Positions 1 to 5,921 are shown, counted from the first letter of the stretch. The stretch: 5,921 bases of DNA from Geosiphon pyriformis uo1 (GCA_016748015.1 JAAOMT010000449.1:1-5921), one strand, 5' to 3'. Numbers and translations: made by a program. The notes: generated from the sequence alone by a model not told the origin.

Positions 1-685
1 CATCTCATATAGCATACATCACTACAATGTGACTCCCATAATCTCTTAGGATCTCTATGATATGTTATACACTACTAAGATGACCATATATACTAGGTAC
101 TATCCCTTACAGGTATTCTAAAGAGTATTACCTATACTAGTTACCTTGGACCTTACACTTAGAATCGCCAGCTACTCCTAGCCATTACAGTCATATGGGG
201 TATGGGATAGTGAGTGTATCTAGCACAGGGATCTAAATGTCCTATGGTACAACTCCTTTAGGATTCTACTGGTACTCGATTATTGCCATCCCCACTAACT
301 CTTGTATCTTGTACTATCTCTTAGAAGTGCTAAGTCTCCTATAGGCTATAGTGCTCTCGCCATGGCTCTACTCTAGCTACTCCCCAGTACCTCTAGTACT
401 TCATGTGGGATCTCAGTATACTATCAAGGATACCCTCACAATACCCCTAGTACATTTGAATCCTATGGCCTTAAAGGGTTTCATAGGGATTACCCATGGA
501 CCTCCCAGTACTTGTCCAAGTGGTGGAGAGCTTGCAAGAGTGATAACCCCTTTAACCCTTATCCTCTAATCCCATAGGTTCACACCACTACTAATTATCT
601 CATAGATAACTTTGACTCCCTCAGATCCTAAAAATGATCATGTAAGTATCATGGCCCTACCTCTCCAACTATACCAGATCCTCAC
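1..685 (+). repeat. Terminal direct repeat, copy 1 (685 nt)
   Basis: CATCTCATATAGC...CAGATCCTCAC at 1-685 recurs at 5237-5921 with no mismatch noticed. The ORF track gives the same 72-aa peptide at 351 and 5587, an offset of 5236. Confidence 0.97.
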
Positions 686-2424
686 AATAGACAGACTCCT
701 AGTATAATGGACAGTCATAGCTTTGATTCCCTAGACTCCTCTCAATCCTACATAAGTGCCATCCTTCATAGAGTACAATAGCAGGGTATCCTCCCCTACT
801 AAAACCTGGTACTCTAATAGAGAGCCTTATAGGGATAGCGTCATTATCCTATATCAATTAGACAACTTAGACTTGACGACTTCCCTGTACACAGCCCTCC
901 AAGCCTGTACTGAGTCCCCTACAGCCAGGGCCCTTTTGTACCAGTAACAATAGGAGGTAGGCCCCTATTTTTCCGGATGGGCCCTAATGGAGTACTTTGA
1001 CTGGGATACCCATTGGGGACCATGGTACTCGAGAACCCTGTATCTCCCCTTATACACTTTTGGTCAGATGGGTCCCTTGCACTTATTCGATGTGAGACAC
1101 CTATTTGGGTACTACTGAAAGTAGATCTCAAACTAAGCGCCAGTGTATCTGACAATCTACTATCATATCTGACTAGCTAGTTCCTCACTTAAGCATAGGA
1201 ATCCTATATCTGATGACCATCCTTGTATGGACTGCATTGACTTGGGATCAGTTCATATTAACTGTCCAATGGATATCTAGACTACATTACCAACCTTAAC
1301 TATTACTGTATCTCAACGCACACTGTAATCAACTATGTACCATCCCCTTAGCACTTCCACTGGAACCCTGTGATACGTATCCTACCCACTATAGCCAGTC
1401 CCATGATATATGACCAGAATCACATTGGGACAGTATCATATAGATGCTGAGAGCTCTCCTAGATCGACCTGCTACGGATCACACAGGATGTATTGCGATA
1501 GCTAACTCTATAGATGAATAGGCTACCCTCTGTAGGGTGCTAGACTGCCTCTTATACATACAGTGCTAAGGACCTGTACCTGCTCAATCTTCCATGACAG
1601 GGTACCATTGTTGTAGGGGGATCTAACCATGACCATAACTTTTACTAACCCACAGGGATGGTAACTGCTACCATCTCAATAAGGTGTAGCCTCCTACAGT
1701 TACGGGATACTTACCTTTTACCTCATCAGGATGACTACTATTGTAGGATGGCAGTTCTGCCCACGCTTATAGATCTAGAGCTTGTACCAATAGCTATCCA
1801 CTCAAATGGGGACTGATACCCCAACATGACTGTATCTCTAAGTAGTGTAGCAAGTACCTGTACTGGACAGCATTTAGGATGCCATCCCCTCTGTATTAGA
1901 CAGGGACTGTCCACTTGGGGTATGCTACAGGCGCTGAGATACACCGTCTAATCAGTCCTCACATTGCAAGGTACTGATCCTATACAAACATGACTGTACT
2001 ACAACTACTCTGCGGATAACTGATAGGGTCTCATCACTTAGTAAGTCCCACTACCTGTACTACTTCCACCCTTATCCTTGAGGTTATGGGGCGCCTATCA
2101 CTCTACCACACTAAGTACCCACACCACACATACGGAGTACAACTAATACAGTCCACATCAATTAACAACTATCTAAACAGTATACTCAATAGACAGCCCA
2201 CCAGTAAGATAAGTACCTATAGGTATTAGTACACTAGTGGGATTGTGTAAGGTACAATGACTATCATCTGCCCGTAGAGTCACACAGGTCCTTGTACTTG
2301 GTGCTGGATCAATAGTATTCCGATCTGCTATCACCCTCCCTATCTACCATACTACCCGGGATTAGCACGTACCTCTGAATTGGGATTGTGTGTACTTATT
2401 AGCATACCAATAAGGTTAGTAGCA

Positions 2425-2434
2425 GTACCCTGTC
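2425..2434 (+). repeat. Left boundary direct repeat GTACCCTGTC
   Basis: 9/10 identical to GTGCCCTGTC at 3753-3762 and located at the compositional switch. Confidence 0.6.
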
Positions 2435-2727
2435 CCATATAACACCCATTACTCACCATATCACACCCCTTATTCCACATACCATACCCTATCATGCCCT
2501 TATACCTCTCTCTATCCCACCATTACCCAATGTGCCAAGATATACCCTCTACCACTCTAGCCCCCATACCACCCCACACAAGCCACTATCCCACCCCAAT
2601 CCCAGATACCACCATATTCCACTATAACCCATACCCACCAATGTAGCCCATGCCACAATGGGCATCCCATCCCACATGATGTCACACTATATGCCCATAT
2701 CCCCCATATGCCCTATATTCCCCTATC

Positions 2728-3266
2728 CCACTATCTGCCCCCAGGATACCTATGTGGCATCCCATATGCACCATATACCCAGATTACCCACCCCAGATAC
2801 CCACCATCCCATATACCCACAATACCCCTAGATCCCAACTATAGCCCCATATGCCAGCCCAATCCCCCCACTAGCCAAATCTGCCACCATAGCCACCATA
2901 CCACTACCCTAACCACCATACCCTATGTCCCAGACCCATTCACTATACCCTATGTGGTAGTCCCTAGACCCATTTCCTATACCCATCTATCCCACAAGAT
3001 ACCCATATGCCCATATCCACAGGATGTGGTACCCATATGCCCTATCCACAACCCACTATAGCCCCCCATAGCAACCCCATAGGGGCCCTATAGCCCAAAT
3101 GTGGCACTACTGCCATACCATAGCCCTATCCCACTCTACCCCATGTGGCACCCTAGACCACTATCTGCCCAGATCCCAATATCCCACCATATGTCCTATG
3201 TGGCACCTATATCCCATACCCTAGATACCACTATTTGACCCATCCCCAATGCCCCACTATCTGCCC
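2728..3266 (+). repeat. Three exact copies of the 13-mer CCACTATCTGCCC
   Basis: Copies at 2728-2740, 3158-3170 and 3254-3266. Confidence 0.85.
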
Positions 3267-3586
3267 CATGTCCCACCAGATACCACTATGTGGTATCCCC
3301 TATCACTATGCCCAGATGTGGCCCCATACCACAATGACCCCCATATGTCCCTCTATCCCCCATGATATCCCAATACCACCATACCCACCATGTCCCAGAT
3401 GCCCTATGTGGCATACCCTATTACCCATATGATACCCCATGCCCCAATACCACCATGTGGCCCCAATATGCCCCCAATGTGCACCATGTGGCACCCAGAT
3501 ATCCCACCTATCCATAGTGATCCATCAACCCCAAGGTCCAAAAGGGACACCCTAATAACCCACCCAGCCAGATGTGCCCAATGTGG
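2752..3586 (+). repeat. Dispersed co-oriented ATGTGG motif array (12 copies)
   Basis: ATGTGG at 2752, 2952, 3024, 3099, 3143, 3198, 3288, 3316, 3406, 3455, 3486 and 3581, usually followed by CA, CC or TA. Only one + strand copy was seen elsewhere in the unit (403). Confidence 0.88.
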
Positions 3587-3752
3587 CCCTATCACCCATC
3601 CCCTATCCACTATATGCCCACATCTCCCATATCACACATCATATGCCCACCATATCCCATTATACCCAATATGACCCATCATGACACATCATATCCCATT
3701 ATATCCCACTATCCCACATCACACACCATCCCACCATTATACCCCACTATAT

Positions 3753-3762
3753 GTGCCCTGTC
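3753..3762 (+). repeat. Right boundary direct repeat GTGCCCTGTC
   Basis: 9/10 identical to 2425-2434. Complex sequence resumes immediately after it. Confidence 0.6.
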
Positions 3763-4189
3763 AAAGGACTTGTTAGGAGAGAGTTGGTGGACTGGTAGCA
3801 GCCATATCCACTGACCAGTACGGATACACCCACTTAGTATATACATCCCTGTAAGTAAGCAAGCCTTGTCAGAGATCGTACACTACTCTTAACATGGTAA
3901 CAATATCATACTTGCACATCACTAGCTAGTTACCAAATACTTAGATGAACATATCCACATCAATGGGGGATGCTAGCTCCATTGCCAAGTGTCCAACTAT
4001 CAGTATTTACAGGCTCCTCACCAATCCCCACTGGAGCATGCCATAATCAGCCCATCACACTCACTCCTTGTAATAGATCCTTGTTAGCTATAGGCCTCCT
4101 GATCACAAAGACCCATGACAGCTACCTACCCATCCCCATCCAGGACTGGTACTACCACTACAGTTCAAATCCTACCATCTGTGAAGATC

Positions 4190-4203
4190 ATGAGGATCCT
4201 CAT
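4190..4203. repeat. Perfect 14-bp palindrome ATGAGGATCCTCAT
   Basis: The sequence equals its own reverse complement. No function is inferred. Confidence 0.6.
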
Positions 4204-4613
4204 CAGAGTCCTAGATAAACTTCCATGCTCATTACCTTTGAATATGACCTACTGGGTATGGGAGGATCTTAACCAATAGCTACCATGGTGATACCCTGAT
4301 TACTGATGTCAAGGCTAAGAGTACCTCAGAGGATCCTGTAGCTTCTACCCTAAGTATTACCTAGGATCTACTTGTACTTGTGGCCTATACTAGACTAGTA
4401 ATCAAGTTGGGTACCTTAGTCATAGCTAAGACTGTCAGTGCTGCTGATCCCACCTAGCTATAAGTACCTGCCTCTCATGGTTAGGGTGAGAGTACCAGTC
4501 GGCATCCCCTCCATATTAACGGGCCTTGATTAGGGTAACTAGCTAAGTATCCAGATCCTTCTCTAGATACATGTACTATCACAGTTATAGCAGTATGTTA
4601 TAGTTCCCTATCC

Positions 4614-4773
4614 CCATCCTCTAGGGTCTCTACGGGCATTAGATAGGTACAGCTATGTATTAACCTATGCTTACTCATCCAAGTACTAGTAACTGGTAAG
4701 GATATTCACAGATGTCAGGTATTGTATTGATTCCCTCAGTCTACTGGTATATAGCCGACCCTAGAGGAGATGG
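4614..4773. repeat. Inverted repeat enclosing smaller hairpins
   Basis: TCCTCTAGGGTC (4617-4628) is the exact reverse complement of GACCCTAGAGGA (4757-4768). Pairing extends to CCATC/GATGG if a 2-nt bulge is allowed. Confidence 0.6.
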
Positions 4774-5236
4774 ACAACCTTTTACCACTACCAAACAGTA
4801 CTTATGATACCCTAGATTCTAGAGTGTGAGCGCTAGGATACTGATTTTACACTGGATCCCGAAAATTCTTATCACATCCTAAGGTCCTAGACCCAATCCA
4901 ATACCTATGCTAATAACAAGTCAGATCTGTCATGGTGTGAATCATAAAGGTACCTACCACCCTCCATACTTAGAGTACTGGGGATATGAGGTATCCCAGT
5001 AATAAGACAGTATCTCTCTAAGTGACACAGTAATCAAGATCCTAGCTAACTATACCAATACTGTCATGTAGCTATCCTAGATCTATCCACTGAGGACCCC
5101 AGTAGCCACTACAATCACTGTTAAACGTATCCAGTACTATCAGCGGACTGGTAGGACAAGGCAGTATTGGACCCCTGTATTGACGATCCCTTTACCATAC
5201 TATCCTGAGTGTACCTATACTTGTAAGTTCATGGCA

Positions 5237-5921
5237 CATCTCATATAGCATACATCACTACAATGTGACTCCCATAATCTCTTAGGATCTCTATGATATG
5301 TTATACACTACTAAGATGACCATATATACTAGGTACTATCCCTTACAGGTATTCTAAAGAGTATTACCTATACTAGTTACCTTGGACCTTACACTTAGAA
5401 TCGCCAGCTACTCCTAGCCATTACAGTCATATGGGGTATGGGATAGTGAGTGTATCTAGCACAGGGATCTAAATGTCCTATGGTACAACTCCTTTAGGAT
5501 TCTACTGGTACTCGATTATTGCCATCCCCACTAACTCTTGTATCTTGTACTATCTCTTAGAAGTGCTAAGTCTCCTATAGGCTATAGTGCTCTCGCCATG
5601 GCTCTACTCTAGCTACTCCCCAGTACCTCTAGTACTTCATGTGGGATCTCAGTATACTATCAAGGATACCCTCACAATACCCCTAGTACATTTGAATCCT
5701 ATGGCCTTAAAGGGTTTCATAGGGATTACCCATGGACCTCCCAGTACTTGTCCAAGTGGTGGAGAGCTTGCAAGAGTGATAACCCCTTTAACCCTTATCC
5801 TCTAATCCCATAGGTTCACACCACTACTAATTATCTCATAGATAACTTTGACTCCCTCAGATCCTAAAAATGATCATGTAAGTATCATGGCCCTACCTCT
5901 CCAACTATACCAGATCCTCAC
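5237..5921 (+). repeat. Terminal direct repeat, copy 2 (685 nt); probable circular overlap or start of the next tandem unit
   Basis: Matches 1-685 and runs exactly to the window end. Confidence 0.97.

Follow-up and report, generated by a model that had tools for sequence, protein, structure and literature searches.

A gene-free, circular-mapping DNA of Geosiphon pyriformis shares its unusual composition with part of a contig that bears nad4L

What is a piece of fungal DNA that maps as a circle, resembles many other small contigs in composition and seems to hold no gene? The question is raised by a 5,921-nt contig of Geosiphon pyriformis uo1 (GCA_016748015.1, JAAOMT010000449.1:1-5921), here called C241, which was analysed at its full length, so that the window is the whole contig and flanks are absent. 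Bases 1-685 are exactly identical to bases 5237-5921, which gives a unit of 5,236 nt and a contig of about 1.13 unit copies. As direct terminal repeats imply a template that is either circular or tandem, the 685-nt terminal redundancy and the 5,236-nt circle or tandem proposed by a first-pass annotation of this DNA are confirmed. C241 is one of at least 11 small circular-mapping DNAs that have a compositional 'dialect' in common and almost no sequence, and this composition links it to a contig carrying the mitochondrial gene nad4L. The reading that we favour, tentatively, takes C241 for a plasmid-like or subgenomic circle of the mitochondrion that codes for nothing, is replicated in trans by its host and carries a block of C/G runs as its cis element.

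The two-part architecture seen at first pass also held up, as the unit consists of a 1.3-kb C-run block (2435-3752) and 3.9 kb of unique sequence. The block is composed of 41% C and 9% G, with a GC skew of -0.5 to -0.69, and outside it C accounts for 25-26% and G for 18% of the bases and repeats are absent. Only short inverted repeats occur in C241, and its internal repeats are degenerate, with identities of 78-92%. The assembly to which the contig belongs comprises 128.3 Mb in 792 contigs, and a search of it with bases 700-5236 (that is, without 1-699) found no second copy elsewhere. The main parts of the contig are the following.

1-5236, no strand assigned: complete unit, a circular-mapping or tandem element, defined by the exact 685-nt end overlap in a window that is the whole of C241
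1-685, no strand assigned: terminal redundancy, copy one, identical to 5237-5921
5237-5921, no strand assigned: terminal redundancy, copy two, identical to 1-685; the assembly overlap across the 5236/1 junction
1-2434, no strand assigned: unique non-coding arm, joined to 3753-5236 over the junction, with no repeats, ORF matches, Rfam matches or folding signal and with the family's unusual base composition along its whole length
3753-5236, no strand assigned: unique non-coding arm, blank in the same tests as arm 1-2434
2435-3752, plus strand: strand-asymmetric C-run block, a degenerate repeat domain and candidate cis-acting element, C-rich on the plus strand and G-rich on the minus strand

The claim that C241 holds no credible gene was borne out by a range of searches. 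Among its 29 open reading frames (ORFs) of at least 40 amino acids, the longest (117 amino acids) lies within the low-complexity block, and none of the 20 ORFs of at least 41 amino acids that were tested matched a Pfam family at E≤1. Rfam likewise gave no match at E≤1, and ARAGORN called no transfer RNA (tRNA) in its standard and mammalian-mitochondrial modes; its permissive metazoan-mitochondrial mode returned one doubtful tRNA-Pro(AGG)-like fold (3112-3183, minus strand) that lies within the C-rich block and is probably a false positive in view of the silence of the other two modes and of Rfam. Codon periodicity was absent, with period-3 power at 0.9-1.6 times the median. Alternative genetic codes and all subsets of the stop codons were tried and rejected because under every subset the longest frames sit wholly or largely (≥60%) in the low-complexity block. 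A tblastn panel of 139 ORFs (30.7 thousand amino acids) from fungal-type mitochondrial metagenome contigs, which is incomplete and which short modules could escape, found nothing better than E=0.27 in C241; on a sibling contig the same panel matched nad4L at E ~1e-21. No excess of RNA folding was detected in 132 windows over both strands, in which the z-scores had a mean of 0.04, a standard deviation (s.d.) of 1.1 and a minimum of -3.45. Searches for relatives were equally blank, both by blastn against plasmids and phages and by exact 21-22-mers against IMG/VR and GTDB genomes, and when 10 ORF products and the nad4L of sibling C52 were compared for exact identity with a collection of 15 billion proteins, from which records of the same genome were possibly excluded, none had a record. 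Because C241 is without detectable coding capacity, its maintenance must be in trans. The earlier proposal of a non-autonomous minicircle or member of a multipartite genome is therefore upheld as regards trans maintenance, and also as regards membership of a set of many small circular-mapping contigs, one of which has nad4L; its further suggestion, that the element carries RNA, fragments of genes or recoded genes, gained no support from Rfam, the stop-codon subsets, folding or tblastn.

The composition of C241 is as unusual as its lack of genes. The unit has a GC content of 45%, and its observed/expected dinucleotide ratios are very low for CpG (0.15) and low for ApA (0.50) and TpT (0.52), and high for TpA (1.49), ApT (1.33), CpC and GpG (both within 1.3-1.5) and TpG (1.32), with CpA at 1.07. 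Runs of A or T are very few, and those of at least 4 A number only 4 in 5.2 kb. We know of no genome type with a matching make-up. An origin of the TpA excess in repeat-induced point mutation was rejected, as TpG and CpA are not depleted, and, on reasoning only, neither base swaps, two-colour miscalling nor editing-type change of an AT-rich template would reproduce the observed asymmetry. The dialect is absent from 16 loci of large nuclear contigs, where TpA is 0.62-0.88 and ApA/TpT about 1.0-1.3. For a quantitative test, a second-order Markov model was trained on six other family contigs, with nuclear DNA and generic fungal mitochondrial DNA (mtDNA) as the alternatives, and it scored 33 of the 35 windows of C241 as dialect.

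The same dialect was found in C133, C208, C246, C324, C66, C81, C88, C97 and C148 and in part of C52, with CpG at 0.10-0.36, TpA at 1.19-1.76 and ApA/TpT mostly low; these siblings were sampled in part, as pieces of about 3 kb. Some of them also map as closed molecules. Of the 25 matches to the motif CCCATATGCCCATA at no more than one mismatch, 21 fall in the small contigs C51, C52, C81, C109, C183, C208, C241 and C246, and the match positions repeat at +10,186 nt in C81 and at +8,448 nt in C109, so that both contigs have terminal redundancy, close on themselves and map as circles, C81 of about 10.2 kb and C109 of about 8.4 kb. We infer that C241 is a true circle. C246 and C133 are related in another way, as 1,380 nt at their ends (C246 3202-4581, locus L011; C133 1501-2880, locus L012) are 100% identical, tail to tail, so that the two contigs are pieces of one larger dialect molecule.

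Beyond this overlap, the family has very little sequence in common. The siblings have patchwork segments of 27-87 nt in common at 91-96% identity, none of which occurs in the unique arms of C241. No common core was found among the contigs, and searches of the genome with bases 700-5236 and 2400-3800 returned C241 alone; no 11-mer occurs in at least 6 of 10 family contigs, and with the siblings partly sampled the sharing is barely above the Markov expectation. Within C241, the block alone matches the siblings in a sensitive blastn search, weakly (58-60%) and in a compositional manner, to their C-rich blocks. Each sibling has its own, analogous version of the block, with a few short motifs in common. 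One of these is the 13-mer CCCACAAGATACC, which occurs exactly only 4 times in the 128 Mb of the assembly, each time in this family (C241, C133 and twice in C208) and on the strand that is rich in C, and a reversed-pattern control has 0 copies. The sibling circles carrying 2435-3752 itself that the first-pass annotation had expected in the same assembly were therefore not found, and the analogous blocks and this 13-nt motif stand in their place. A supposed match of sibling C246 on the nuclear contig C702 was considered as a possible nuclear copy of mitochondrial DNA (NUMT) and rejected, since it consists of a (GGTAGT)n microsatellite only. The nuclear locus concerned (L015, C702:1633458-1636548) contains long (GGTAGT)n/(AGT)n microsatellites, the source of spurious matches, low in identity, with the G-rich strand of the dialect contigs.

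The connection to mitochondria comes from C52. This contig, seen in locus L019 (C52:4614-7459), carries an intact nad4L of 89 amino acids, fungal in type and length, whose best relatives among solved structures are fungal (Chaetomium 7zm7 at E=1.6e-17, followed by Yarrowia). It is a mosaic: about 1.8 kb comprising nad4L and the sequence downstream has ordinary CpG and is scored as non-dialect, and the adjoining kilobase is CpG-poor, contains long G runs in a G-run block and is scored as dialect. The mosaic has the look of a recent event in which dialect DNA captured ordinary mtDNA, or ordinary mtDNA captured dialect DNA. Two metagenomic mitochondrial contigs, Ga0314762_1002210 (L051) and Ga0314770_1001864 (L061), encode nad4L relatives at 46% and 37% identity, the former being the closest full-length match and the latter more distant; their GC content of 39-43%, TpA of 1.3-1.4 and ApA/TpT of 0.66-0.81 represent a milder bias in the same direction as the dialect, which may mark the same fungal lineage. 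Together these observations suggest a mitochondrial location for C241. A further contig, C310, which carries an eroded nad4L-nad5, was considered as an intermediate and rejected, because it is AT-rich, non-dialect and of a different class. No locus for COX1 (PF00115) or for PF00361 (nad2/4/5-type) was found in the 128-Mb assembly, from which it follows that the main mitochondrial genome is not in it. That genome has seemingly been removed, and a published table counts 795 scaffolds against the 792 contigs here. A precedent for multi-circle mtDNA in the Glomeromycota is provided by Rhizophagus sp. DAOM 213198, which has two circular mitochondrial chromosomes (PMC4316621).

If C241 is copied in trans, the block is the sole candidate for an element acting in cis. 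The host machinery, presumably that of the mitochondrion, would replicate and segregate the molecule, and the C-run/G-run block may serve as the origin or maintenance element, for example through strand-asymmetric replication primed by an R-loop or a G-quadruplex. By analogy, it would resemble the CSB II (conserved sequence block II) region in the mtDNA of vertebrates and the GC-cluster ori elements through which the rho- petite genomes of yeast over-replicate. The block holds 104 of the 172 runs of at least 3 C in the unit, at a median spacing of 10 nt, and fast Fourier transform peaks lie at 9.1-9.8 nt; its repeats are degenerate, tandem and 9-39 nt long. Canonical G-quadruplex (G4) motifs number 7 on the minus strand and 0 on the plus strand. 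All around the unit, each window has more C than G, so that the GC skew is negative throughout, and a skew of one sign fits strand-asymmetric rather than bidirectional replication. No homology of the block to any known ori was found. Three smaller features were mapped in it.

2991-3003, plus strand: the family-specific 13-mer CCCACAAGATACC, one of its 4 exact copies in the 128-Mb assembly
3648-3751, plus strand: degenerate tandem repeat of 38-39 nt, 2.6-2.7 copies with 80% matches (Tandem Repeats Finder)
2436-2489, plus strand: degenerate tandem repeat of 21 nt (family D17), 2.6 copies with 78% matches, located at the block's left edge (Tandem Repeats Finder)

Among known systems, C241 appears to work most like the rho-/senDNA-type amplicons or gene-less mitochondrial plasmids. 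Yeast rho- (hypersuppressive petite) genomes and the senDNAs of Podospora are amplified subgenomic mitochondrial circles or concatemers. Like C241, they are small, take the form of head-to-tail units or circles, contain little or no coding sequence and are replicated in trans, and several units can coexist; they rely on an ori-like element of G+C clusters, for which the candidate in C241 would be the 1.3-kb block of C/G runs, with its 7 G4 motifs all on one strand but no homology to a known ori. However, each rho- or senDNA unit corresponds exactly to a stretch of the main mtDNA, whereas Geosiphon has more than 10 sequence-unrelated units of odd composition and an assembly from which the main mtDNA is absent. 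The Mauriceville/Varkud, LaBelle and Fiji plasmids of Neurospora, fungal mitochondrial circles of 3.6-5 kb without homology to mtDNA, resemble C241 as we read it, but each of them encodes a reverse transcriptase or DNA polymerase of its own, and the 20 tested ORFs of C241 have no Pfam match. Rhizophagus sp. DAOM 213198 is glomeromycotan, like Geosiphon, and has more than one circular mitochondrial DNA, and its chromosomes involve relics of plasmid-type dpo; these chromosomes are large and gene-bearing, whereas C241 is 5.2 kb long and empty (PMC4316621).

The first-pass annotation had also pointed to kinetoplast, diplonemid and dinoflagellate circles, and here the likeness is a general one that fails in detail. 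In these groups, as is proposed for Geosiphon, an organelle holds many small circles that are gene-poor or seem empty and are maintained in trans. Kinetoplastid, diplonemid and dinoflagellate circles have a conserved core or constant region in common and carry guide RNAs or gene modules. In contrast, the universal kinetoplastid 12-mer of conserved sequence block 3 (CSB-3), GGGGTTGGTGTA, has one site in C241 with 2 mismatches, where 1.63 are expected by chance, and instead of phased A-tracts and AT-richness C241 has its 4 runs of at least 4 A, an ApA ratio of 0.50 and 45% GC. The diplonemid plan of a large constant region, common to every chromosome of a class, plus a short unique cassette is at odds with the searches that returned C241 alone, and its gene-fragment cassettes with the best tblastn value of E=0.27 from the incomplete 139-ORF panel; a core of the kind found in dinoflagellate plastid minicircles does not agree with the lack of an 11-mer in at least 6 of the 10 partly sampled family contigs. 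The gene associated with the Geosiphon circles is, moreover, fungal. Small DNA viruses (the circular Rep-encoding single-stranded (CRESS) viruses, polyomaviruses and microviruses) have genomes filled by Rep or large-T and capsid genes, whereas C241 has no Pfam match, long ORF or phage match, and the genome-wide self-complementarity or strong folding excess of viroid-like or rod-shaped circular RNA replicons is not seen in its inverted repeats, which are short, or in its folding z-scores (mean 0.04, s.d. 1.1, 132 windows).

How well the favoured reading of a host-replicated mitochondrial circle stands depends on the alternatives and on several observations that count against it. No NUMT-like copy of the element was found in the nuclear contigs; the unique arms have nothing in common with C52 or the other contigs, so that the mitochondrial link is one of composition only; with the main mtDNA absent, the notion that the dialect is its neutral composition lacks a comparator; and CpG in a panel of fungal mtDNAs is 0.5-0.73, far less depleted than the 0.15 of C241. 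One alternative is that the contig stems from a tandem array that has been collapsed, or that it is a segment, bounded by repeats, of some larger genome (the main mtDNA or a nuclear satellite), and is not an autonomous circle. From a tandem repeat as well as from a circle, a long-read assembler would produce a contig like this one, of 1.13 units and with the same sequence at both ends; derivation of C241 from the missing main mtDNA is compatible with the data, and the methylated nuclear repeats L039, L046 and L047 are likewise strongly CpG-depleted (0.02-0.04). We nevertheless consider this explanation unlikely, if a serious one, because no flank is present in C241, nor in C81 or C109, which close on themselves too; more than 10 different units of 4-10 kb, all flankless, would be odd for satellites; and the nuclear repeats, which are rich in AT and have a TpA below 0.9, are the reverse of C241 in composition. 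That the circle is instead an organellar minicircle or plasmid of a fungus or protist contaminating the Geosiphon culture, and survived binning, is quite improbable in our view. In its favour, the 45% GC dialect is foreign to a nucleus of 29% GC, in a published genome of 129 Mb and 795 scaffolds (PMC9453076); the nuclear contigs hold no copy of C241; and the nad4L of C52 is only 33-50% identical to the metagenomic relatives found. However, that nad4L is fungal in type and length, the COX1 and PF00361 genes expected of a second eukaryote's mitochondrion are absent from the assembly, and C241 lacks the kinetoplastid and diplonemid minicircle features that were tested and the shared core of dinoflagellate circles.

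The strange composition could also be technical, arising as de novo or scrambled DNA in whole-genome amplification or from systematically miscalled long reads. An ApA/TpT of 0.5, a TpA of 1.5 and scarce A/T runs unlike any genome known to us would fit such an artefact, as would the lack of relatives among plasmids and phages and in the exact-word searches of IMG/VR and GTDB. Yet direct terminal repeats can arise only where the template is circular or tandem, CpG depletion together with TpG excess is a biological signature, and the degeneracy of the repeats and the 91-96% identity of the segments common to siblings are marks of descent with mutation. The intact nad4L ORF contiguous with dialect DNA on C52 argues against miscalled reads, which would have broken it. 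We therefore give an artefact scant credence and are confident that C241 is real DNA. Least probable of all, to the point that we would be surprised by it, is that the circle carries gene modules, guide-type RNAs or genes that are heavily edited or written in an unknown code. Diplonemid and kinetoplastid gene-poor circles do seem empty at the DNA level; C241, however, lacks a period-3 signal, its long frames fall entirely or for the larger part in the low-complexity block, the mitochondrial ORF panel, Rfam and the tRNA searches found nothing, the folding z-scores are centred on zero and the siblings have no conserved block in common.

New in this analysis are a classifier that scores the dialect quantitatively, motifs specific to the family, the recognition of C52 as a mosaic and the tests of C241 that revealed neither a common core nor fragments of genes. 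A wider proposal is that the mitochondria of Geosiphon keep a standing population of at least 12 sequence-unrelated, gene-free circles, each with its own C/G-run block and written in a private neutral dialect, which perhaps reflects a polymerase or copying mode different from that of the main genome; this proposal is rather doubtful. If it is true, such circles would make up an ecosystem of replicons that are purely selfish and carry no information, and to our knowledge organellar DNA of this kind has not been described in fungi. In a practical respect, the dialect contigs are part of a nuclear assembly that is public, and unless they are labelled they will lead annotation and comparative studies astray. 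If the circles are real and mitochondrial, one fungus would hold well over 50 kb of unique, gene-free and independently replicating DNA, and it would offer a test bed for the minimum cis information that a mitochondrial replicon needs, for the persistence of selfish organellar DNA and for neutral mutation pressure in this lineage.

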